DNA from: Basidiobolus meristosporus CBS 931.73
Lineage: Eukaryota; Fungi; Basidiobolomycota
Reading direction: 5' to 3'
Assembly: GCA_002104905.1 (NCBI GenBank)
Contig: MCFE01000129.1
Coordinates: forward strand, 96,098-160,097
DNA length: 64,000 nt
Shown: one piece after another, positions 35,208-64,000 of the stretch
Position numbering within the stretch: the stretch's first letter is position 1
How the letters are laid out: each line of letters opens with the position of its first letter
Position numbers and translations under genes: made by a program
Notes under the pieces: generated by a model
Told to the model about the DNA's origin: nothing
The model's database searches: none
The model's input: the letters and a program-made list of their open reading frames with translations, nothing else

Positions 35208-37271
35208 TCAGACGATGCTGATTTGATGCTCTTCATGGCCCCGAGTATTCTCCTTCTCCAATGTATTCTGGCGATAGAGTTGTGGGATTTGATCAGCACA
35301 TTTTACAGCTTCGCTGACGGTTAAATGTACATAGCGATGCTCTCCTTCTGGGGGATCTTCGGGAGCGCGAGTAAAGCCTGCACCTTCAAGACGAGAGAAT
35401 ACTTCCGGTTGGAGGCCGACAAAATGAAGTTCGAATAGCGGATTTCCGGAGTATTCTATTAGCTGAGTCTTGAGGTCACGTAACGCTTGTATCCCTGAAG
35501 AGTCTATATGGTTTGTTCCGCTACATTCTAGAATAACCGACTTGAGGTACGGATAAGTGGCTTGCTGCTCCTTCTCCATCATCTTCTCCGGTACCTCGTG
35601 CCCATCCTCATCCAAGGGCTGGTTGGTTACCGGAAGTATTGTATGAAAGTTATTACGCATTCTTGAGATTCGAGCCTCCTGGTCATCCGACCACACCCGG
35701 TCGGCCCAGGAGGAGGGGAGCTCGGTGGAAGAGTCTGTGGCAATATAGACAGCGTTGAGGACCTTGCCCTTGAAATATTCGGCGTTCAGAAAACTGATGG
35801 ATTCCGATAGTCGGAAGATAATAACGCCGTCGGGTGGTGCAGAAGCACGGATTTTGGCATTGGCACGATCAGCATACACGCCGTCCATGCCTTCGACTGG
35901 GCCAATCATCTGCCAGTTAGGGCGGGCGATGCGGTGAAGACTGATGAGGAGGGTGAAGCCGACAGCCACCTCAATTCCAGTCTGAATATTCGTAAAAAGA
36001 GTGACAAAAAATGCCAACAGCGAGGCAATCATGTCAGTTGCCTGGATTTTCCACAACCTCCAGAATGTCTTGTAGCCCACAATAAGCGTGTAGATACTGG
36101 TCATGATGATCGCGGCCAGACTAGCCTTTGGCACATAATAAATCAAGGGTGGTAGAAAGTTGAGAGAGAAGATGACGATAACCCCAGTGATGATTCCGCT
36201 CAATGGGGTTTTGACACCTGACTGCGAGTTGACGGCAGTTCGGGAAAGAGCTCCTGGGCAGAGATACGAAGAAAAAAAGGAATTCGTTATGTTGCAGATA
36301 CCCAGACTGATCAGCTCCTGGCTGCCGTCCACTTTATAATGGTTTTGTCGGCCGTAGGTTCGAGCAGCAGCAAAATGCTCCAGTATGGCAACCAATCCCC
36401 CGATGATCGAGGGGCCGAGAACGTCGGAAAAGATAGACGAGCTAAGGTTAGGAAGGGTTGGTTTGGGGAGACCGGTGGGAATGGTGCCGACCAAGAGAAT
36501 TCGATCCTCGCCGAAAGCAACATGCATGATGTAAGCAGCAAGTGTGAAGATGATCACACAAACGGCATTGCGGCCAACACCGAGAACCTTGACCGCGGGG
36601 TGGATGTAGCCGAACCTATCTGCGATGTACTTCAGGGACATCAAGAAGGCGATGGATACAAACCCTACGATGGCGTCTTCGTATCTGGTCCTCCCGAGTG
36701 CGGAGAAGATCGATTTTAGCACAGTGTGGATCGGCCCTTGAACAACGACTCCTTTGATCCCCAGCAGTGAAGGTATTTGACTAACCAAAATGGTGATGGC
36801 AGCGCCTGAGGTGAAACCGAGTGTAACGGGCGAGGAGATTAAATCCATGATGATGCCCAATCGCAATATCCCCAAGATAAGACAGAAGCACCCGGACAGA
36901 AAGGCCATAGTGATGGCAGCAACAACTGGGTCCTGGCCTTTTTCTACGATGTCTTTCAGTGCCACACCAACATAGAGGGAAACAATTGCCGAGGGCCCTA
37001 TAGTGACATCTTTCGATGTGCCAAAAAGACAGTATAGCATCACGCCCAGGAACGACGAGTACAGCCCGTACTGAACTGGAAGAGTGGCAAGCGAGGCATA
37101 GGCCAGAGCTTGTGGGACCACCATGATGCCCACGGTTAGCCCTGCAATCACATCCCCAAGTAGCCACTTTCTGTTATATCTTGGAAGCCAGGAGATAATG
37201 GGCAGGAAGCGCTTGGCGAGGTGCTTAGCATCAATATTCTGCACTCTCTTTCGTACCTCGTGAGTGAACAT
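35208..37271 (-). CDS. SLC26/SulP sulfate permease with STAS domain, intronless, 687 aa
   Basis: GDVIAGLTVGIMVVPQALAYA, YGLYSSF, GFTSGAA, SQELISLG and SRTAVNSQSGVKTP motifs; STAS features (FLNAEYF, VILECSGTNHIDSSG). Confidence 0.95.
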   Translation of the reverse strand: MFTHEVRKRVQNIDAKHLAKRFLPIISWLPRYNRKWLLGDVIAGLTVGIMVVPQALAYASLATLPVQYGLYSSFLGVMLYCLFGTSKDVTIGPSAIVSLYVGVALKDIVEKGQDPVVAAITMAFLSGCFCLILGILRLGIIMDLISSPVTLGFTSGAAITILVSQIPSLLGIKGVVVQGPIHTVLKSIFSALGRTRYEDAIVGFVSIAFLMSLKYIADRFGYIHPAVKVLGVGRNAVCVIIFTLAAYIMHVAFGEDRILLVGTIPTGLPKPTLPNLSSSIFSDVLGPSIIGGLVAILEHFAAARTYGRQNHYKVDGSQELISLGICNITNSFFSSYLCPGALSRTAVNSQSGVKTPLSGIITGVIVIFSLNFLPPLIYYVPKASLAAIIMTSIYTLIVGYKTFWRLWKIQATDMIASLLAFFVTLFTNIQTGIEVAVGFTLLISLHRIARPNWQMIGPVEGMDGVYADRANAKIRASAPPDGVIIFRLSESISFLNAEYFKGKVLNAVYIATDSSTELPSSWADRVWSDDQEARISRMRNNFHTILPVTNQPLDEDGHEVPEKMMEKEQQATYPYLKSVILECSGTNHIDSSGIQALRDLKTQLIEYSGNPLFELHFVGLQPEVFSRLEGAGFTRAPEDPPEGEHRYVHLTVSEAVKCADQIPQLYRQNTLEKENTRGHEEHQISIV

Positions 37272-44183: not shown

Positions 44184-47100
44184 TGTTGTAAGAGTCATGG
44201 AGATATTGGAAGTGATCTGGAGAACAAGTACATTATATGCTTTGATTGAATGATTGATTGAATGTAAAAGTAGTATTTATACTTATACATGGTCTTGGCA
44301 TAACAAGCATGTAGAATAGGCTTAGGAAGGTCCCAAGAACATGTGTGCAAAGTTTGAGGCTGTTTGGACAACTTTGAGAGCATCATGTTCTGGGTACCTG
44401 GTATTTTGGTGAAAATATTCCAAGTAAATTCCAACAAGGAATTTGATCAGTGTTCTCTAGTATTTGAAGGTAATGATCTAAGTGACTAGGTTAGGTGAAT
44501 ATTTAGGTGGAATTACAAACTTTTACAACATTCCCACTCAGCTAAATGTTTTTACTGACTAGTCTTAATTTTGACCTACAATATTCAAACTTGTCTCTAG
44601 CTAATGGTTTGGTGAATATGTATGCAATCACTTCATCTGAAGGACAGTAAGCTAAGCTAACTAAGTTATTCTCTATAGCTTCACATATGAAACAATGTCT
44701 AATATCTATGTGCTTAGTTCTAGTATGAAAAGTAGGATTTCTATCTAATTATATACATCCTTGATTATCTTGAAATAAAGTAGTGGGCATTTTTTGACAT
44801 TAGCCTAAATCTGTAAAAAGCCTTCTTAACCACATTGCTTCTTTTGTAGCTTCCCGGGCTGCCATATACTCTACCTCTGTGGTAGAAAGTGCTACAGTTG
44901 GTTGCTTTCTTAAATTCCATGAAATTGCTCCTTGACAGTGAAGAAAGGTGTATCCTGTGGTGGATCTTGTGTCTTCAAAATTTTGTCCCCAATCAGCATC
45001 AGAATATCCCACAAGATCCTGCTCTGAATCCTTATAAGTGTATCTTAAGCAGACATCAGCAGCTCCTTTTAGGTATCTGAAAATCCGCTTAACAACTTCA
45101 ACATGATCAGATCATAGTTCTGATTATGCTGGCTGACTACTCCCATTGAGTATGAGATATCTGGTCTTGTTCCAAGCATGAGATACATTAGACTGCTGAC
45201 TATAGATTGATAAGGAAAGTCAGGGCTTTCAGATGGCCCCAAGCTCTCTTGATTTGGTTGAGTTTTGACCAAGTTAAGGTTTGTCTCCATTGGGGTAGCT
45301 GCTGGTTTACAGTCTTCCAATTGATTTTTCTTTAGATATCTTGAATATACTTGGATTGGCTTAGGGTGATAGTCTGGCTACTTCTGTCTATGGAGAACTT
45401 TATCCCTAAGTAGTAACTGAGTTCTCCTAGATTGGACATCTTGAACTCTCTAGATAGGCTGGATTTAGACTCTTCCAATGTTGATTGGTTGTTGGTGGCT
45501 ATAATAAGATTATCCACATATAGAGCTAATAGAGCTGGATTTGCTCTATCTGGCTTGTAGTATATAATATAGTTAGCATTACTCCTTTTGAAACTCAAAG
45601 ATTCCAAATAAGAATCTATCTTGCAATTCCAGGCCCTTGGTGATTGTGTGAGACCATATAGAGATTTTTTAAGCTTGCAGACCAAATGGGGGTTATCTTG
45701 GCCAAAAAACCCATCAGGCTGGTCCATATACATGTCCTCATCAAGTTCTTCCTTCAAAAATGCAGTTTTACATCCATCCAATATATAAAAAACTTGTATT
45801 TGGCTGTAATAACCAATATCAATCTGATGGAATTAAACTTGGCTACCAGTGCAAAGGTCTCAGTATAGTCAAGTAATTTTGCTTGAGAGTATCCTTTGGC
45901 CACAAGTCTTGCTTTGTATCTTTCAATTGTACCATTAGCCTTGTATTTTGTCTTAAAGACCCATCTGCACCCAATTGATTTTTGGTTGATTGGTAATTTG
46001 GCCAAGTCCCAAGTTTGATTTTCCATCAGGGCCTGATATTCCTCAGTCATTGCAGATCTCCAAAACTTTGTCTGAGGGCTATTTAGGGCCTCTTTTACAG
46101 TCTGGGGCTCATCAATATGGACTGAATAGGTATAGGCTAAGTTTGTGCCCTCATTGATATAGTAATTTGGGCTATTTCTTGTCCGATTTGATCTCCGGGC
46201 ATTTGGTACTGGAATGATCACTTCTGGGATATTCCTGGGCACTGATTCTGGCTGAACCACAGTTGTAGAGTCCTCTGGAGTGAAAAAATTTCATTGTTTT
46301 GCTCTGATTCAATCCTGACAATTGGTGGACTTGAGATCAAATTTTTGTCATCATCTGATGTTGTTTTTTGTGAAAGTTTCAAAATTTTCATCAAACAACG
46401 CATCCCTGGACTTGATCAGCTTCTTTGCTTTGGTATTGTAGAGTCTGTATGCCTTACTCTCATTGCAGTAGCCCAAAAATATACATTTTACACTTTTTGG
46501 CTCAAATTTTGACTGATTTCCAGCCAGTTTTTTGGCATATGCTGTACACCCAAATATTCTTAGATGTTCTGCACTTGGTCTGTGTCAATACCATGCTTCA
46601 AATGGAGTAGAATCACAAAGTATTCTGTTATAACTCCTATTTTTAAGGTATACAGCAGTGGCAACTGATTCCGCCAAAAATTATAGGATAATTTTTGATC
46701 ATGGATCATAGATCTTGCCATATCAATTATTGATCTGTTAGCTGGTTCTGCTACTCCATTTTGCTGTGGGGAGTATGGTACAGTGGTCTCTTGCTTTATC
46801 CCATAAATTTTGCAGAAGTGGATGAAGAGTTTTGAGGTATACTCTCCACCATTGTCAGAGCGTATTTTCTTGATTTTTTCACCAGTTTCTCTCTCCACCA
46901 TGGCTTTAAACTCCCTGAACTTAGACAGAGCTTTTTCCTTTCTCTCCATGAAGTAGACCCATGTGTATCTTGTATAATCATCAATAAAAGTGATTAAGTA
47001 CTTCATCCCGCCTAAGGATAAATTTTGCATAGGTCCACACAGATCTGAGTGAATTAGATCTAATTTTTTCTTAGTTTTGATTAACCCAGAGCTCTTGAAT

Positions 47101-47955
47101 GGTTGTATGGCTTGTTTCCCATATATGCAGACTTCACAGTGCTCCAAATTAGCTGGGGGATCAATTTTTACTCCAGAAATTAGCTGATCTTTGATCATTT
47201 TACGCAAATAATCAAAATTGATGTGTCCAAATCTCCTGTGCCAAAGCATTGGTGTTTCTTCATTTAAGTTACTTATATTGGCTTCCAGATATGATGGAAT
47301 ATAAGTCAACTTGTATAGATTCTGATCTCTGATGCCTGAAGCAATATGGGTACCATTTTGATCAGTGATCCTGCATCCAGAATTGTCAAAACTGAAAACA
47401 AGTCCTTCTGCTGTGGCCTTGCTTACAGAGAGTAGGTTCTTGGCTATTTCTGGTACATAGAGTACTTCTTTAAAGGTCAGTGAATGGCTTCCTTCACTGC
47501 TTCTAAGGTTTACTTGGATAGTTCCTTCTCCCACTGCATCAAGTGTTCTATCATCACCCATGAAAACCTTCTTAATTGGAATTTCTTGATATTGGGTAAA
47601 GAGTTCATTTTGGTGTGTAAAGTGTTGAGATGCTCCAGAGTCAATATACCACGTCTGAGAATCCTTGTTTGTGGTCATATTTAGTGCAGATATGAATAGT
47701 CTATCTTCAGTTGTTGCAGCATTTCCATATTCTGGCTTCTTTAGCTGATAATCTCTCTTTTTGAGACACCGGTCTGATGTGTGTCCTTTCCTCTTGCAGT
47801 AACTGCAAAACAGGTTGCTATTGCCTTTGTAGGGTCTTGGGTACCTCCTTTGTTGATTATCATTGCTTATTAAAGCATTTTCTTCTTCCTTCTTTTTGGT
47901 GCTTAATTTTCTTAATTCTTCATCCAGGAGCCTTCCATATGTTGTAATTATTAAG
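44184..47955 (-). mobile_element. 5'-truncated Ty1/Copia element: 3' LTR 44184-44530, decayed RNase H/RT, integrase, protease, zinc knuckle; cut in gag
   Basis: LTR TGTTGTAA...TTACAACA is related to the LTRs at 4652/7614; PPT at 44531-44540. Motifs: CSYCKRKGHTSDRC, WYIDSGASQH, HRRFGH...CEVC, IHSDLCGP, SDNGGEY, QQNGVAE, YKARLVAKG, LYVDN, GYSDADW. Frameshifts present; no 5' LTR. Confidence 0.93.
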
Positions 47956-48026
47956 TTAGGGTTAGGGGGGGAGACATTCACCAACAGGTGAAATCTTTAT
48001 TTCAGTTGAAACAAAGAAGCCAGCGC
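47956..48026 (-). mobile_element. One telomere repeat plus the terminal 65 bp of a family-B telomeric LINE
   Basis: TTAGGG TTAGGGGGGG AGACATTCACCAACAGGTGAAATCTTTATTTCAGTTGAAACAAAGAAGCCAGCGC, identical to 54601 onward except for one base. Confidence 0.92.
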
Positions 48027-55230: not shown

Positions 55231-58000
55231 CTACTGTTGTAGCTTTGATACAAGAGTGTGTAGCTGAGGGGAATTTGTAGGTAAGTTAATAAGAAGTGAT
55301 GATAGTTCTTCAGTGCTCAAGACACTGTTCAGTGGGAAGGGGGGTAGCAAGAGAGGTAAGAATGACTTGTGAACAACATTAATGAGGGGAATGTGATAAG
55401 GATTGATATTCATCATAAAGGGAGTGTGCTGCTGCAGATATTGCTGCCAAAGGTCTGTCAAGTACTTCAGGTAGGCCAGCTTGGGTTTTTCTGACTGCTG
55501 AATATAGTGAGCAAACTTCTTGACTTCAGGATCACCAAGTATAGTTCTCCAGCAGGAGCCAGGTGTAGTGTGGTGTGTTCTCTTCCAGGTCTTAATCAGT
55601 GGGTTGTTGCAGATGTGAAGTCTGAGGTATAATCTGGTTCTAAGGTAGAGAAGTCTGATCTTATAGGGCATAAACCCAAAAGCACCAAGAATAGCATGTC
55701 TGTAGGGGCATTCAGGCAAATGAGGCACCAAGGAGGTAATGCACCATACTGCAAACTTGTCAAGCTTAGTGCAGTCTCTAAAAGTAAGAGAGAGAAGTGG
55801 TAAGCCAAATTCCAGGACAGGGAAGACAAACTGCTTGAGTAGAAGGAGGCAGCTGGGAGCTGAAGTTGTAGGAGGAGTAACAGCCAGTAGCTTGTGGAGT
55901 GCCTGTCTTGCTAGGATAATTCTCTTCTTCAGGTGTGCTCCAGAGTCTAGTCCAGTAGGAAGGAAAGGAAAGCCAGGATATGTAGCAGAAACCTGAGCAG
56001 GTAGAGTGGAGTTCTCCAAGTTGATGGGAGAGCCCAAAGGTACTGTCTTTGCAATGGAAAGCTGGAGATTATTCTTCTGCAGATACTGGTGGATGGTCTG
56101 GGAGTCTTCTTGCACACTGGAGGAGGATATTCTGATGTCATCAGCAAAGAGAGTAACCAGGCAGTCAGCTGAGAGTCTTGGGAAATCATTCAGGAAGATG
56201 GCAAACAGTATAGGACCAAGCACAGAGCCTTGAACCACTCCATTAGGAACTGAGAACACAGCTGATTGCTCACTTGGGTGCAGAATTCTTGCTTGTGGAT
56301 CCAGAAACAGAGACCTGACAAGGAGGGTGAGAGAGGTACTGGAGAAGCATTGCAACTTGGACCAAAGCAGATTTCTGTCAACTGAATCAAAGGCCTTAGT
56401 AATATCAAACAGAACAGAGGGATACTTGCACTGGAGAGAGTGATCTTGGCTAAGTATGACAGCATATTCCCAAGGAGAGGCCAGGAACAAAGCCAAACTG
56501 TGCAGGATGAAACTTGAGGGAGTCAGAGTAGAGCTCCTGAGCAAGCAGAAGCTCAAACACCTTTCTGCAGGTGGGCAGCAGAGATATTGGCCTGTAGGAG
56601 CTAGGATCCAGGTGCTTTCCTTTACCCTTGTACAGTGGCAGAACATTTGCAAAGGACCATTCCTCAGGAGTAGAAAGCTGGGCTGAGCATTGCTGAAACA
56701 GTGGAAGCAGAAGTGCAGACATGGCCTTGGTACTAGTCTTCAGAAGCTCATAGGAGATTGTGTCCACACCTGGAGCAGTATAGTTGGGAAGCCTCTTGAG
56801 CACATTATGGATTCTCCTTTGATCAAGTGCAAGTGGGTTGGGCAGAGTCTTGAAGTCAGAATGAAAGCCAGGAGTTGAGTACTGCTTTGTAGAGAAGAAG
56901 ATGTTAGCCAGTTGTTCTGTTGAAGGTAACTTCCTGGAAGAGGGCCTCATTGCCCTGTAGAGTCTTGATACTGTTCTTGTTATAGAGTTGGAAGATTGCA
57001 GAGGCAAAGAACTCATAATATGATCCCAGAGCTGAGTATGCAGAGTGTGGTGAATTGCCTTGGAGTGGTGTATTGCTGTCAGGAGGAGTTTCTCTGTTTT
57101 TGGGTTAGGGAAACTCAGGTAGCTTTGTTGCAGGGCTGAAACAATGGATTCCCATTTTCTTGAGGTAACAGCAGTAGTCTTGCATGGCAGTGAGAGGGAG
57201 GCAGACACCAGAATCAGATGCTTCACAAAGAGCCAGGCATAGTTGAGATCATCTGGCAGAGAAAGTAGCAAACTGGCAAGCTTCAAGTAGTTCCCAAAGT
57301 CTTTCTTCTGATTCTTGGTAGCTTTGTGGGTGAGCACAGTAAGTTTTGGCAGCTTCTTCTTCACAACTGGTTGCATAGAAAGGGACCAGGCTGGGTGGTC
57401 AGAGGCTCTCAAGGATCCTAGCTCAGCTCCAGAGAATTGCTTAACTTCATTCACAAAGTAGAGGGCAGCAGCAGAAGGGCAGATCCAGTCAACACATCTT
57501 TTCTCAGATTGAGCACCTAGTGCTAGCAGGTGGCTTTCTCTCAGGAAGTTCAGTAGGAATGTAGACCTTGGCTTCATTCTTGCAGTCAGAGTAGTCTTGT
57601 TCTCAGGATGGGGAATGTTGAGATCTCCAAGCAAGATAACAGGTGTTGATATAGATTGTTGGTATTGCTGAACTTTCTGGCATATAACTTGCACTTCCTG
57701 AAGGGCAAGACTTGGAGGCAGATAGCAGAGCACCAGACTGATAGTTGGCAACTGAAGAGCAGCACAGTAAGGGGAGTAAAGAGGAACACAGAGCTGAGGA
57801 GTATTGATGGTAGAAGAGATGAAGCAGATAGAGGAGGTATTCTTTGTTCTAGGAGTAGAAAAGCAATATAGATTAGTCAAAAGTATAGAGGGTAGCTGAA
57901 CATCAATCAAACACAGGAGGGAAAATCTTGAAAGAAGTCTCTCTAGAGTTGGTCTTGATGGCTGTATGCTGTTGCAGTTAAGCAACAGAACTTCAGGTAG
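55231..58000 (-). CDS. Family B ORF2: APE endonuclease + reverse transcriptase; one 1-bp frameshift at 56469-56471; no AUG at its start
   Basis: LLNCNS, YLPP, GDLN, VDW and SDH (APE); YRPISLL, QFGF, FDITKAFDSV, GVVQGSVLGP and FADD (RT). Deleting one C of CCC at 56469-56471 merges the two track ORFs. Confidence 0.88.
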
Positions 58001-58707
58001 TCAGGCAGAGGTTGTGGCTTCTTCAGAGGCAGCATTGATAATGTGACCTGCAGAGTCCCAGAGCTCTTCAAATGGTGCATCACTTAAGTCAGCAAGGAGG
58101 GAAATGGCATGATTCTTGAGGAAGTATGCCACATCATAGGAGGGGGCTTGTCTCTTGATGGCAGCAAAGAAAGACAGAATGGCAACATGGGCTGGTGACT
58201 TGTTGAACAGTAGAGAGTCAGAGGATTCAGATTCTTCAGGCACTATCTTGAAGTCAGTTTTCAGCCAGTTAAGGTTCTTCTCCACAAAGGCAACAAATGG
58301 GTCAGCAATGTTTTGGTCTAGGATAACCTCCAGAATCTTCCCTTTTCTCCAGGCCAGGTTGACAATTCTTGAGAGCTGAATATTGCATGCCTTGAGTGCT
58401 TTCCTGATGTTGGAAATGGGAGTCCAGGGAACTTGCTTCAAGTACACCACAGTCCAGGTAGAAGCTGGTGGTAGGTTTGCTGGGGGCTTGTAAGTCCTTC
58501 TGTGTTGCAATGGAGCTGCAGTAGTCAGATTGGATTCCACATTCTCAGTAGAAGGTTTTCTTGATGTGTCTTGCTGAATAGTACTGGAGCTGGATGTGCT
58601 GATAATTCTTGCTAGAACCTTGCCTGCATAAGTCTGAGGTATAGATGAGGTGACTGTAGAGGTGGTGGCAGCTGGTGCAGGTGGAGAGGCAGAGACTTGA
58701 GCAGGAA
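58001..58707 (-). CDS. Family B ORF1 (partial; nucleic-acid-binding, possibly RRM-like)
   Basis: Homologous to A ORF1 (YKPPANLP, VPWT.ISNIR, IVNLAWR.GKILE, YDVAYFLK, APFEELW). The track start at 58732 lies in the neighbouring element. Confidence 0.82.
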
Positions 58708-58710
58708 GGG

Positions 58711-59237
58711 TTAGGGGGAGGAAAGTCACCAAGTGGTGAAATCTTTATTTACTTATGACAAGTATTTAAAGAAGCCAAGTTAATCTGAAGTAATTCCTAG
58801 AAAGCTAGGTCTGAGAGATATCTTCCTGGTAAACCAGGTCTGAGAGTTGAGAAGCTGAGTGGTACTATATTTCCTAGTTAGCTAGGTCTGAGAGAGGTTT
58901 CCTGGAAAGCCAGGCCTGAGAAGTGAGAATCTGAGTATATCTGAGGTGAGTTGTACTGATTTGCGGTAGCTTGTTTGTGGCCAGAATGGCCAGTAGACTG
59001 GGGGAACTGAGGGGTATTTCTGGGCGATCACTGGCCAAATTTACTAGGCAAATTTGACCAATTAGCATTTCAAGGATTTCAGCCAATCAGAGCCTTTACT
59101 TTGCCCGATGGTTGATCAAGCCATCTCCCAATGAGCACACATCAATTTATTGATCAAATTTTGTTGGATCCAGGATTTGAACCCACAACCATGGGTATGG
59201 AAGGGTTAGGGATAACCACAAGGCTAAGTGTTCTTGG
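58711..59237 (-). mobile_element. Element D1: probable tRNA-headed SINE with a LINE-type 3' tail (527 bp)
   Basis: On the minus strand: A-box-like TAGCCTTGTGG (59226-59216), B-box GGTTCAAATCC (59183-59173), no TTTT run, no ORF, and a 3' end shared with families A and B. Confidence 0.72.
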
Positions 59238-59646
59238 TTAGGGGGGAGACAGTCACCAACAGGTGAAATCTTTATTTCAGTTGAAACAAAGAAGCCAGCG
59301 CTACTGTTGTAGCTTTGATACAAGAGTGTGTAGCTGAGGGGAATTTGTAGGTAAGTTAATAAGAAGTGATCATAGTTCTTCAGTGCTAAACACACTGTTC
59401 AGTGGGAAGGGGGGTAGCAAGAGAGGTAAGAATGACTTATGAACAACATTAATGAGGGGAATGTGATAAGGATTGATATTCATCATAAAGGGAGTGTGCT
59501 GCTGCAGATATTGCTGCCAAAGGTCTGTCAAGTACTTCAGGTAGGCCAGCTTGGGCTTTTCTGACTGCAGAATAAATTCAGCAAACTTCTTGACTTCAGG
59601 ATCTCCAAGTATAGTTCTCCAGCAGGAGCCAGGTGTTGTGTGGTGT
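59238..59646 (-). mobile_element. 5'-truncated family B copy (B2), followed by GGGTTAGGGTTAGGG
   Basis: Nearly identical to 55167-55577 with several substitutions; truncated in the HHTTPGSCW codons. Confidence 0.92.
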
Positions 59647-59661
59647 GGGTTAGGGTTAGGG

Positions 59662-59897
59662 TTAGGGGGGAGGAAAGTCACCAAGTGGTGAAATCTTTAT
59701 TTACTTATGACAAGTATCTAAAGAAGCCAAGTTAATCTGAAGTTATTCCTAGAAAGCTAGGTCTGAGAGATATCTTCCTGGTAAGCCAGGTCTGAGAGTT
59801 GAGAAGCTGAGTGGTACTATATTTCCTAGTTAGCTAGGTCTGAGAGAGGTTTCCTGGAAAGCCAGGCCTGAGAAGTGAGAATCTGAATATATCTGAG
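59662..59897 (-). mobile_element. 5'-truncated copy of element D (D2)
   Basis: Nearly identical to 58711-58945. Confidence 0.92.
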
Positions 59898-59991
59898 CTA
59901 AGTTAGGGGGAGGGAAAGTCACCAAGTTGGTGAAATCTTTATTTGGGTTAAGAACTAATCTAAGTACAAATAAAGAAGCCAATTAAGAGGT

Positions 59992-62841
59992 CTAGAACCT
60001 CTCTAATAAGTAATCTAATTTATGTTTTGTTTCATCTCTAATGTTTGTTTCAATAAAGTAAAGCTCATCAGGGGTAAATATAAAATTCAGGGGTTTTGGG
60101 GGAAGTACAAATTGTAGATGTTTCTGATCAATATAATCCAAGACTGGAACCCAGCCTGGGATTAGGTGTAGTAGGAAAGGTGTGTGGACTTGTAAGTAGC
60201 TCTGCCACATAGATCTTAGATGGTCCTGAGCCAGTAGTCTTGGTTTCTCAGCTTTTTGAAGTTTTGAAGCAAGCTCTGTTACTACAGCAGAGCCAACCAG
60301 GGTGTGCCAGCAAGAAGATTTCAGGGAGGAGTTAGATTGAAGCCATAGTTTGATGGAGGGGTTATGTGATTTCTGAAGTTTGACTAGGAAGGAAGCCCGG
60401 AGATAGATCATTCGGATTTGGTATGGGTAGAACCCAAAGGCTCCATTAGTTGCATGGATATAGGGAGATACTGGAAGATAAGGTACCAAGGATCTGATAC
60501 ACTGATGGAGAAATTTATCCAGGCGGTGAAGTTCTCTGGAGGTTAGGGGTATAATGTGGAGACCAAATTCAAGTACTGGCAGCACATAATGCTTCAGAAG
60601 TATAGGGATCTTTTGAATTGGAGTGTCTGGAGTGACTACTACCAGAAGCTTTTTGAGAGCCTGTTGGGCAAGACGGATCCTATTATTCAGGTGGAGCTTT
60701 GAGTCAATCCCATGTTGACAAAATGGCAGACCTAGATATATTGCAGTTTGTTGTGGCAGAATGCTAGTGTTCTGTATAGTTGTAGTGCATCCAATTGGGA
60801 CTGTCTTGGAAATTGAGAGTGAGAGGTTGTTGGCAGCCAAGTACTTCTCAATGATGGCAGTGTCTGCTATGGGATTAGGAGTAGCAATCTTGATATCATC
60901 CGCATAGAGAGTTAGTAGTGGATAGGGAGAGTCTGGTGAGGGGCCTTTTGGAAATAAAGGAAAGTCATGTAGGAATATCACAAATAGTAAGGGACCTAGT
61001 ACAGATCCTTGGACTACTCCATTTGGAACCTCATAAGTCTCTGATGTGCAACTTGGATGCAAAATTTTGGCTGAGTTCTCACAAAATAGAGAACGTACAA
61101 GAAGGGTCATTGGTAGTGTGGTAACTGCTAATAGCTTTCTCCAAAGCAGAGCTCTGTCCACAGAGTCAAAGGCTTTAGTAATGTCAAACAGAATGGTTGG
61201 CAATGAGAATTGAAGTGAATGATCATGGCTTAGCACTACAGCCATATCCAAGGAGAGTTTGGGCAAGAAGCCAAACTGAGAAGGATGGAATGGATATAGT
61301 TGAGATTGCAAGGATCTTGCTATCATAAGCTCAAAGATTTTCCGGCAGGTTGGTAGGAGTGAAACTGGCCGGTAAGAACCTGGGAGTGAGTGTTTCCCCT
61401 TCCCTTTGTATAAGGGTATTACATTTGCCTGTGACCAGGCCTTTGGGGTAGTCAATTGTTGGGCACAGATAGAGTAGAATGGGAGAAGTAAGTGACTCAT
61501 TTTGGAGTAGCACACCCGGAGTAGATCGTAGGTAATCAAGTCATGTCCAGGTGCAGTATTTGCAGGAAGCTTCTTTAAAATTTTCTCCAGAAGCTTTGCT
61601 GAAACCACAATTGGAGATGTTGGACTGGTGGATATGTTACCAGTATGGTAGAAAGGAGGAGTGGGATGCATGGTTGAATCAAAGAATATAGGGGCCAGTT
61701 TGTCTGGTGATGGTATACTCCTTGCTTGGGGTCTCATGGCTTTGTATACTCTTGATATGGACCTTGTGGTGGCATTCATATTTACTAAGGGCAAGGTATC
61801 CATGATATGAGCCCATAATCTAGTATGCTCAGTGATCTGTAGTGACTTGGAGTAGGAGATTGCGCTTTCCAGGAGGTTCTGTGTTTTTGGGTTAGGGAAA
61901 CATAGGTAGCTGGAATTTAAGGCAGAAATGATGGATTTCCATTTAAGTTGGTTTGCAGATGGCTTTTGGTAGGACTTGGTGGGCAGGGCCAGACAGCCAG
62001 TGATTATGATGAAATGCTGGTAAAATAGCCATAATGCATTTATATCATCACAAATCCATGCAGGTAAGCTGGGAAATGCATATTCTGTAAGCAAGGATAG
62101 GTAGTTGGCAAAGTCCTGTGTCTGTGATACTGAAGCTTTGGCTGGCAGGATTGTAAACGGCTGAAGAAGGGTGCCAATTGGTAGGGTTTTTCTGGCAGAA
62201 ATGATAATATGTATTGGCTTGTGATCAGATTTCTCTAGTGAACCACAGCTGATATCCTCTGGAATGCTTGTAACCTGGTGGATGTACTGTAAGGCAGCTG
62301 GAGTAGCTGTTACCCAGTCAACACAACGTTGAGCTTGCTGAGTGTTTACAGTGACCAGATGATTTTGTCGGAGGAACTTTTTAAAGTGCTCCTCTCGGGT
62401 TCTAAGTCTGGATGAAATAGTGGTGATATTTTCAGGGTGGGGGATATTTATATCTCCCACTACCATACAAGGGATTGATGAGCTGTTGATGAATTCTGAT
62501 GTGGCCAAGAAAATTGCCAGTGTTATGGAGTTAGACAGAGATGGAGGGAGATAGATAATAATGGCTACTATAGTTGGAAGTGTTAGAGCATAGCAGTAAT
62601 ACTCATAGATGATGGATACATTTGCTGAGGGTGCAAGCTTAGAAGATGAAAGAGCAACAAGTGCCATTGAGTGAGCTGGAAATTTTGGGTGAGCAGATGA
62701 ATATGCATTCAGTCTAGAGGGAAGTTTTGGCAACTTAACATCAATTAGTAGGAGCAAGGAATATTCCTTTTTCAGTAAGTTTTCTAATTCAGCTACAGTT
62801 GGAGTGATGGAGTTGCAATTGAGTAAGAGTATGTTCTGTAG
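59992..62841 (-). CDS. Family A ORF2: APE endonuclease + reverse transcriptase, intact, about 949 aa, no AUG at its start
   Basis: LLNCNS, YLPP, GDIN, VDW, SDH; YRPVSLL, QFGF, FDITKAFDSV, GVVQGSVLGP, YADD. The frame is open from the ORF1 TGA (62842-62844) to the TAG at 59992. Confidence 0.93.
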   Translation of the reverse strand, partial: LQNILLLNCNSITPTVAELENLLKKEYSLLLLIDVKLPKLPSRLNAYSSAHPKFPAHSMALVALSSSKLAPSANVSIIYEYYCYALTLPTIVAIIIYLPPSLSNSITLAIFLATSEFINSSSIPCMVVGDINIPHPENITTISSRLRTREEHFKKFLRQNHLVTVNTQQAQRCVDWVTATPAALQYIHQVTSIPEDISCGSLEKSDHKPIHIIISARKTLPIGTLLQPFTILPAKASVSQTQDFANYLSLLTEYAFPSLPAWICDDINALWLFYQHFIIITGCLALPTKSYQKPSANQLKWKSIISALNSSYLCFPNPKTQNLLESAISYSKSLQITEHTRLWAHIMDTLPLVNMNATTRSISRVYKAMRPQARSIPSPDKLAPIFFDSTMHPTPPFYHTGNISTSPTSPIVVSAKLLEKILKKLPANTAPGHDLITYDLLRVCYSKMSHLLLPFYSICAQQLTTPKAWSQANVIPLYKGKGKHSLPGSYRPVSLLPTCRKIFELMIARSLQSQLYPFHPSQFGFLPKLSLDMAVVLSHDHSLQFSLPTILFDITKAFDSVDRALLWRKLLAVTTLPMTLLVRSLFCENSAKILHPSCTSETYEVPNGVVQGSVLGPLLFVIFLHDFPLFPKGPSPDSPYPLLTLYADDIKIATPNPIADTAIIEKYLAANNLSLSISKTVPIGCTTTIQNTSILPQQTAIYLGLPFCQHGIDSKLHLNNRIRLAQQALKKLLVVVTPDTPIQKIPILLKHYVLPVLEFGLHIIPLTSRELHRLDKFLHQCIRSLVPYLPVSPYIHATNGAFGFYPYQIRMIYLRASFLVKLQKSHNPSIKLWLQSNSSLKSSCWHTLVGSAVVTELASKLQKAEKPRLLAQDHLRSMWQSYLQVHTPFLLHLIPGWVPVLDYIDQKHLQFVLPPKPLNFIFTPDELYFIETNIRDETKHKLDYLLERF

Positions 62842-63797
62842 TCAGGCAGACTCTGAGGTTGCCTGTTCCTGCTGAAACTCTTGCACTGCCCTTTGTAAAT
62901 TTCCAGAATTATTCCACAACTCTTCAAATGGAGCTTGCGTAATGTCTTTCAGGATTCTAATTGCTTCCTCTTTCAAGAAGTAGGCCACATCATAGGTTGG
63001 AGTCTGTTTCTTAATGGCAGCAAAGAAAGCCATAATTGCCATGTGAGCTGGCGGCTTGTTGAATATTCCTGGCTCAGTGTCCATTGACTCTGGTGGAATG
63101 ATTGTGAATTTGGTAGGCACCCAGTTTAGATTTTTTGCCAGATACTTAGTCAATGCAGTGGAGAAGTTTCTGTCTACAATCATTTCTAGGATCTTTCCTC
63201 TTCTCCAAGCTAGGTTAACAATTTTTGAAGTGTCAATATTTAGAGAGCGGAATGTATGTCTGATGTTTGATATAGTAGTCCATGGAACATTGGCAAAGTA
63301 TAGCAAGGACCAATTCTGGAGCTGAGGTAAGTTTGCTGGAGGCTTATAGGTAGACTTCCTGGCAGGTTGTGTGGTAGGCTTTAGTGTTTCCAAGGTAGCA
63401 AGTTGTGGTTGAGACTTTTTGGAATTACGTATGACTTTGGAAAGAATTCTGCCAGCAACTGTGTCAGGAATGTTAGTACTCATTGATGGTGCAGGGCCTG
63501 GCTCCTGGTACTGCTTTTGTAGAATACTTGAGTATGTCTCTTTTTGTTTTCCTTTATCCAATGTGCTATGCCTTGGAATGGGATTTTGGGGAATAGAGAC
63601 TTCAGGTATCAACTCTGGGGTCTGGTGATTGTCCAACATTGTTGCTTGAGCTTCCAGCTTTTCCTCTAAGATTTGAACTCTCTGCTTAAGCTCATCATTT
63701 GACGCTATAAGTGTTGCATTGTTTGGAGCCAGGTCAGGTGTTGAGTTATGAAGGCAGGTTGAGCAGCGTTCTAACTCCTTTGTTTGGTCATCCAGGC
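62842..63797 (-). CDS. Family A ORF1 (partial; CxxC, coiled coil and RRM-like core)
   Basis: The frame of the 265-aa track ORF stays open upstream into the telomere: SLDDQTKELERCSTCLH...NDELKQRVQILEEKLEAQATMLDNHQ. Confidence 0.85.
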
Positions 63798-64000
63798 TTA
63801 GGGTAGGGTTAGGGTTAGGGTTAGGGTTAGGGTTAGGGTTAGGGTTAGGGTTAGGGTTAGGGTTAGGGTTAGGGTTAGGGTTAGGGTTAGGGTTAGGGTT
63901 AGGGTTAGGGTTAGGGTTAGGGTTAGGGTTAGGGTTAGGGTTAGGGTTAGGGTTAGGGTTAGGGTTAGGGTTAGGGTTAGGGTTAGGGTTAGGGTTAGGT
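63798..64000 (+). repeat. Telomere (TTAGGG)n, about 33 repeats
   Basis: Uninterrupted TTAGGG to the window end, with one TAGGG variant at 63804. The G-rich strand runs 5'->3' toward the end. Confidence 0.98.

Follow-up and report, generated by a model that had tools for sequence, protein, structure and literature searches.

An in-frame UGA-CU junction in telomere-associated LINE retrotransposons of Basidiobolus meristosporus points to probable stop-codon readthrough between ORF1 and the endonuclease-reverse transcriptase

How a long interspersed nuclear element (LINE) gets its second open reading frame (ORF) translated is a long-standing puzzle, for which reinitiation (in L1 and SART1), 2A skipping, and proposed frameshifts have been described. 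The question is posed by a stretch of 64,000 nucleotides from the fungus Basidiobolus meristosporus CBS 931.73 (assembly GCA_002104905.1, contig MCFE01000129.1, positions 96,098 to 160,097 of the forward strand; the whole stretch is called the window here, and positions are given in its own numbering). Two telomere-associated LINE retrotransposons, families A and B, lie there on the minus strand beside a terminal TTAGGG array, and in both of them ORF1 and ORF2 are separated by one TGA. An earlier reading of the letters of the window (the original prediction) had proposed that the stop is read through, giving a fusion of ORF1 with both the endonuclease (EN) and the reverse transcriptase (RT) of ORF2. 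All the sequence-level predictions of that proposal that could be tested held, and we consider it probable, on comparative and structural grounds, that programmed UGA readthrough yields the ORF1-EN-RT fusion as a minor product. The elements are APE-type non-LTR (non-long-terminal-repeat) retrotransposons, with an N-terminal APE endonuclease followed by the RT in ORF2, and their parts in the window, all on the minus strand, are as follows.

62845..63801, minus: family A ORF1, 5'-truncated, first ATG at 63639, frame open from the telomere-repeat junction
62842..62844, minus: family A ORF1 stop TGA, the proposed readthrough site
62838..62850, minus: family A junction 13-mer TCTGCCTGACTAC, with the conserved core TCT GCC TGA CT
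59995..62841, minus: family A ORF2, APE endonuclease and reverse transcriptase, 949 codons in the ORF1 frame, stop TAG at 59992-59994
62194..62841, minus: family A APE endonuclease domain, ORF2 residues 1-216, from alignment, model, and fold match
58004..58732, minus: family B ORF1, 5'-truncated
58001..58003, minus: family B ORF1 stop TGA
57997..58009, minus: family B junction 13-mer TCTGCCTGACTAC
57969..57988, minus: family B hairpin, 7-bp stem and 6-nt loop, 12 nt after the stop
56453..58000, minus: family B ORF2 part 1 (APE and the beginning of the RT), 516 codons in the ORF1 frame
55234..56652, minus: family B ORF2 part 2 (the rest of the RT), in another frame, the copy being broken

Read again on the minus strand, the junction is GAG TCT GCC TGA CTA CAG in family A (stop at 62844-62842) and ACC TCT GCC TGA CTA CCT in family B (stop at 58003-58001), just as had been claimed. 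The 13-mer is identical at the two junctions and occurs exactly twice in the window, both times on the minus strand. Families A and B have diverged to just 57% identity over 2.1 kb, and over that length the 13-mer is the joint third-longest exact run between them, lying inside an otherwise poorly conserved linker. Past the stop ORF2 keeps the frame of ORF1 and stays open for 949 codons in A and 516 in B, and TGA is absent within the 949 codons of family A. A host gene for a sulfate permease, at 35211-37271 on the minus strand of the window and 83% identical to proteins of Basidiobolus ranarum, has its stop TGA at 35208; TGA is therefore a normal stop in this genome.

Relatives came from two kinds of search. 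With ORF2 of family A, just five close clusters came up, 44-65% identical and each from a Logan or ENA assembly, and an ORF1 profile run against 1.84 billion representatives found 15 proteins; DNA was examined for twelve of the proteins. Two profile scans of metagenome contigs, based on the APE and ORF1 alignments respectively, found no further relatives. No protein of fusion length was present among the 15 matches to the ORF1 profile, and gene calling would in any case not report a readthrough fusion as a single gene. Ten lineages were thus available for the junction, from at least eight different samples: a core set of nine (A, B, L001, L002, L003, L004-8, L009, L011, and L012), which in the ORF1 tree form one clade with three well-supported subclades, and L015 as a distant tenth. 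From the second codon before the stop to the first after it, their junctions read as follows.

A and B: TCT GCC TGA CTA
L001: TCA GCA TGA CTA
L002: TCT GCC TGA CTC
L003: ACT GCC TGA CTA
L004-8: TCT GCC TGA CTC (ORF2 protein identical across five samples)
L009: TCT GCC TGA CTT
L011: TCT GCT TGA CTT
L012: TCT ATC TGA CTA
L015: CTC CTT TGA CTA (distant, GC-richer)

A single in-frame TGA stands between ORF1 and ORF2 in all ten lineages, and CT follows it directly in all ten; an eleventh lineage, P0110, is in frame by gene coordinates only. At the junction none of the ten (0/10) has a sense codon, a further stop, or an AUG that is conserved. The codon after the stop (+1) is CTA in six lineages, CTC in two, and CTT in two, and is never CTG or TTR. 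Conservation of TGA-CTA and of the frame across homologues, which the original prediction had named as a check, therefore stood for the frame, the TGA, and the CT, and fell short for the full CTA (6/10); likewise the conserved leaky signal proves to be UGA-CU, neither the whole 13-mer nor UGA-CUA being invariant. The share of CTA at +1 compares with a background of 16% among Leu codons, and in L015 CTA accounts for just 1 of 26 Leu codons apart from the one at +1. The stops of ORF2 itself are variable (TAG or TAA), unlike the TGA of ORF1. The nucleotides that are invariant here are, in these alignments, those of the minimal fungal readthrough motif (PMC4207609).

Over codons +1 to +38 the proportion of synonymous differences (pS) is 0.54-0.95, near or at synonymous saturation, and even in the closest pairs (A/L001, B/L009, and L003/L004) the synonymous divergence (dS) is about 1 or saturated. 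The proportion of nonsynonymous differences (pN) is below pS in every pair, and the ratio of nonsynonymous to synonymous divergence (dN/dS) is 0.06-0.15 in the closest pairs, most others being saturated at synonymous sites. The first catalytic Asn falls at codon +8 in 9/9 core lineages, and in L015 a 28-codon Ser/Pro linker separates the stop from the start of the APE domain. Right from the stop, the downstream ORF thus shares the frame and is constrained as protein-coding sequence, as its open frame, the excess of pS over pN, and an APE fold that begins at residue 1-3 all indicate.

These observations bear on two other ways of accounting for the stop. One holds that a dedicated system decodes UGA, through selenocysteine or a reassigned code, or that the stop is an inactivating mutation shared by dead copies. 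Both window copies are indeed defective, and some early-diverging fungi possess selenocysteine machinery. Against this, TGA serves as the stop of a host gene in the window, the long ORFs of these LINEs contain no other TGA, five lineages carry a full-length intact ORF2 of 923-960 codons behind the same stop, and one lineage has an identical ORF2 protein in five samples. Fungi are also said to lack the selenocysteine machinery (PMC4207609), and we regard this account as very improbable. The other holds that a short intron, or some other event at the RNA level, removes the stop, so that the mature mRNA has one ORF; CCTGACT does include CTGAC, which resembles a fungal branch point, and CAG follows it in family A. 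A conserved AG downstream is missing, though, the first AG lying within or beyond the essential LNC(N/H)S in L001, L003, and L004, and codons are conserved at the protein level on both sides, right up to the stop; moreover, splicing needs neither an in-frame stop nor the identity of that stop as TGA. The sequencing runs that matched the element were all DNA runs, four of them from one sample that is probably the source. The DNA contigs are colinear across the stop, with no variant or joined form, an observation on DNA only that is uninformative on transcripts. Splicing across the stop was accordingly rejected on sequence grounds, no conserved 3' splice site being present, and removal of the stop from the RNA is scarcely credible.

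Where the endonuclease begins matters for the choice between readthrough and a fresh start of translation. ORF2 matches Pfam RVT_1 (E 1.6e-20) and, weakly, Exo_endo_phos_2; no RNase H or C-terminal Cys motif was detected in it. A model of the first 260 residues, made with nine homologues, has a predicted local distance difference test score (pLDDT) of 84 and its first beta strand at residues 3-12. Model residues 1-216 superpose on R1Bm EN (Z 20.6), TRAS1 EN (Z 20.1), and APE1 residues 61-318 (Z 19), and the last of these alignments places the invariant N8 at about N68 of APE1. In the sequence alignment the invariant APE motifs are N8, D34, GDxN at 129-132, and SDH at 205-207. The APE profile had zero matches against the PDB by sequence, and it was the fold search that gave matches. 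The predicted endonuclease is structurally closest to those of R1Bm and TRAS1, with scores that tie with ExoIII and APE1 (19-20), so that the fold does not by itself establish membership in the R1 clade.

Since the APE fold begins directly after the stop, translation that began only at the first AUG would lose catalytic parts. Counted from the stop, the first in-frame ATG is codon 59 in A, 142 in B, 71 in L001, 139 in L002, 2 in L003, 103 in L004, and 5 in L009; its position is not conserved, ranging from codon 2 to 142 among these seven lineages. The original prediction had placed it downstream of APE motifs in both window families, and so it is: after N8 and D34 in A, and after GDLN in B. 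Starting at the ATG of A, B, L001, L002, or L004 would cost the protein N8 together with D34; B and L002 would lose GDxN besides. In L001, L011, and L012 the interval from the stop to N8 holds neither an ATG nor a near-cognate start, and there is no ATG at the junction, hence no stop/start overlap, in A, B, L001, L002, L004, L011, or L012.

Two distant groups of relatives, whose ORFs do not share a frame, present the opposite arrangement. L013 has a CA-ATG-A stop/start overlap 17 codons before YLNCRS (L013:1490-1560), and in L016-18 an ATG precedes a TAG stop by 14 nt, with a 17-nt overlap (L016:1600-1630). With an ATG at the junction in L013 and L016-18 and none across the shared frame, a start codon is present exactly where readthrough is impossible.

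The alternative that these data address most directly is termination-reinitiation without an AUG, in which ribosomes would end ORF1 at the UGA and restart within a few codons, making a separate ORF2 protein (ORF2p), and in which the in-frame layout would be inherited and functionless. Human L1 ORF2 reinitiation reportedly needs no AUG, a finding ascribed to Alisch in 2006. Termination-reinitiation is the mechanism reported for ORF2 in L1 and in SART1 (at UAAUG; PMC5972666 and PMC3894237); the distant L013 (AUGA) and L016 (overlapping ATG) resemble such classical coupling, and the ATG close behind the stop in L003 and L009 would fit it too. What reinitiation leaves unexplained is the invariance of the frame, of the single stop, of the TGA, and of the CT in ten lineages at saturated synonymous divergence, and the fact that the spacing from the stop to the Asn has never shifted by 1-2 nt. 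Three lineages, besides, have no AUG or near-cognate codon ahead of the catalytic Asn, and it is the coupled-looking relatives that carry an ATG, while the in-frame lineages are without one. The original prediction had set readthrough against reinitiation of the L1/SART1 type; the comparison disfavours reinitiation, which we judge unlikely and nevertheless keep in consideration.

Several points weigh against readthrough all the same. L003 and L009 have an ATG only 2 and 5 codons past the stop, and because reinitiation is reported for L1, the lack of an AUG is not in itself proof of readthrough. Because the ten lineages share ancestry, they do not count as independent events. That TTR never stands at +1 is weak when taken alone (P ~0.07). 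Copy A is 5'-truncated, its ORF1 frame running open into the CCCTAA telomere repeat at ~63803, and copy B is 5'-truncated too, with an ORF2 that switches frame between 56652 and 56450; because of these truncations, and the frameshift in B, neither copy can be an active source. A hairpin found past the stop in some lineages is missing in A, L001, L011, L012, and L015 and is degraded in L009. An N-terminal fusion of ORF1 to a LINE endonuclease, moreover, is not known to be functional.

On the readthrough interpretation, a single mRNA would be translated from the start of ORF1, and most ribosomes would stop at the UGA and release the ORF1 protein (ORF1p), of putative RNA-binding type, which combines a coiled coil and an RRM-like domain with a helical C-terminal domain. 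A smaller share would decode the UGA by a near-cognate tRNA, since termination is poor in the UGA-CU(A) context, and would continue in frame to make the ORF1-endonuclease-RT fusion, the fraction of which would set a ratio like that of gag to gag-pol. That readthrough occurs, the rate at which it does so, and the role of the fusion as the active enzyme are points that we infer. The context itself is known to be effective: UGA followed by CU suffices for efficient readthrough in Ustilago maydis and in HeLa cells, an A after UGA-CU helps, and UAG or UAA in place of UGA lower readthrough (PMC4207609), while readthrough has been shown for UGA-CUAG, UGA-CUA alone giving ~1.5% in human cells (PMC4132726). 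We also consider it plausible on balance, from the sequences compared, that a deep fungal clade of telomere-associated LINEs makes its EN-RT only as a UGA-CU readthrough fusion, and that sister lineages that lost the frame turned to AUG-dependent stop/start coupling.

RNA structure may contribute in part of the family. A hairpin (CUGUUGC, a 6-nt loop, and GCAACAG) begins 12 nt past the stop in B and L002, and hairpins of 10-11 bp begin 8-9 nt past it in L003 and L004; over B, L002, L003, and L004/L007 the range is 7-12 bp at 8-12 nt past the stop. One compensatory change is seen, from G-C in B and L002 to A-U in L003 and L007, with a G-U intermediate in L004. A family-wide downstream structure was rejected, the RNAalifold consensus across lineages being just 6 bp and weak (-3.3 kcal/mol). 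It is possible, from these alignments, that the hairpin raises the rate of readthrough in B, L002, L003, and L004, as an enhancer limited to that subclade and with no family-wide requirement. Murine leukaemia virus (MuLV) uses a pseudoknot for its gag-UAG-pol readthrough; the signal here differs in being a short context, with a hairpin in some lineages only.

ORF1 had zero Pfam matches. Its conserved C-terminal 170 residues form in the model (pLDDT 77) a beta-alpha-beta-beta-alpha-beta domain and, after it, a helical one, and model residues 106-180 gave mostly RRM matches, with a best Z of 8.0 and others of 5.5-6.9, values below 8 being common for the tool. Full-length relatives (L002:193-400 and L004:1169-1380) have an N-terminal CxxC...CxC cluster and then a predicted coiled coil; the 5' truncation has removed the Cys cluster from both window copies, and ORF1 of A keeps a remnant of the coiled coil. 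The models suggest a layout like that of L1 ORF1p and a putative nucleic-acid binder. A feature search with ORF1 matched only unnamed Mucoromycota clusters.

Among known systems, the nearest in signal are the metabolic genes read through at UGA-CU(A), namely tpi1, art1, and rpe1 of Ustilago maydis and human MDH1 and LDHB (PMC4207609), along with OPRL1 and AQP4 at UGA-CUAG (PMC4132726). The UGA-CU(A) metabolic genes share with the LINEs the stop, the two invariant 3' nucleotides, and the preference for A next, and in them readthrough works in fungi and does not need long-range structure; they differ in appending a short C-terminal tag (e.g. a peroxisomal signal), whereas here a 950-residue endonuclease-RT would be added, in a retrotransposon gene. 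In layout the likeness is to gag-stop-pol elements such as MuLV and the Candida albicans long terminal repeat (LTR) element Tca2, which is gag-UGA-pol; Zorro3 has four in-phase stops with a bypass of unknown kind (PMC3956500). As in MuLV and Tca2, one in-frame stop lies between a structural protein (nucleic-acid-binding there, putatively so here) and the polymerase, and a minor fusion product sets the stoichiometry there, as is proposed for these LINEs. The difference is that the latter are non-LTR elements (APE plus RT, target-primed) and have no protease to free the polymerase.

With SART1 and human or mouse L1 the elements share a bicistronic LINE RNA and a low level of ORF2 from ribosomes that have translated ORF1, and the SART1-type stop/start overlap is seen in the distant relatives L013 and L016. 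They differ in that A and B, like eight relatives, lack a start codon at the junction, hold strictly to one frame, and keep the leaky stop context, none of which reinitiation needs. Like TRAS1 and SART1 of Bombyx (R1 clade), they are APE-type and stand head-to-tail in telomeric repeats; unlike them, they have a fungal host, a TTAGGG repeat, and an RRM-like ORF1 domain with no Pfam match. The Arabidopsis Ta11/ATLN LINEs, of L1 type, are reported to have ORF1 and ORF2 in frame across one stop, a UAG, with possible suppression; this concerns a different LINE clade as well as a different stop, and is a lead only. In our literature search no paper turned up that treats readthrough in LINEs or the telomeric LINEs of Basidiobolus.

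Should the interpretation be right, UGA-CU readthrough would be a fourth mechanism for LINE ORF2, and one that is easily tested. An ORF1-EN-RT fusion could then serve as the working enzyme of a target-primed element, and these LINEs would be the first non-LTR group with gag-pol recoding of the retroviral kind and no protease. The family would also capture an evolutionary switch between two modes of ORF2 translation, and the in-frame relatives and those with an overlapping AUG make a natural pair for dissecting the ratio of ORF1p to ORF2p. For annotation the consequence is practical: where an ATG is demanded, ORF finders cut these ORF2s short by 58-141 codons, and the active site of the endonuclease is lost.

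The setting of the two copies is telomeric. A perfect TTAGGG array (plus strand) at 63803-64000 closes the window, the end of which is therefore a chromosome end, and the truncated 5' end of copy A is joined straight to the telomere repeats. Beyond copy A come further LINE units and units resembling short interspersed nuclear elements, stacked head-to-tail with a CCCTAA where each meets the next (59650-59667 and ~58707-58715). On the minus strand the 3' ends of the units consist of AATAAAGATTTCACC-N-TTGGTGAC, an inverted repeat with a short loop, followed by a C-tract and CCCTAA, and they lie as follows.

59930-59990, minus: unit end carrying AATAAAGATTTCACC-N-TTGGTGAC
59690-59740, minus: unit end with the same module
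59255-59300, minus: unit end with the same module
58715-58760, minus: unit end with the same module

From its sequence, the module looks like a 3' recognition module shared by families A and B and the short non-coding units. Coexistence of families is seen elsewhere: sample ERR14042384 holds the A-like L001 together with the L004-like L006, as A and B occur together in the window, and a multi-family LINE system seems to be shared among related hosts. A 269-residue ORF1-like gene is found at L014:264-1073 (GCA_040143965.1, JASJQH010002740.1), with a TAA stop, no ORF2 behind it, and a subtilase gene adjoining on the opposite strand; on this arrangement the gene may be an ORF1 that stands alone or has decayed, or else a domesticated copy. 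Finally, a Ty1/copia-type integrase fragment (Pol_BBD, gag_pre-integrs, and rve) at 46563-47984 on the minus strand of the window adjoins a CCCTAA repeat at 47956-47967.

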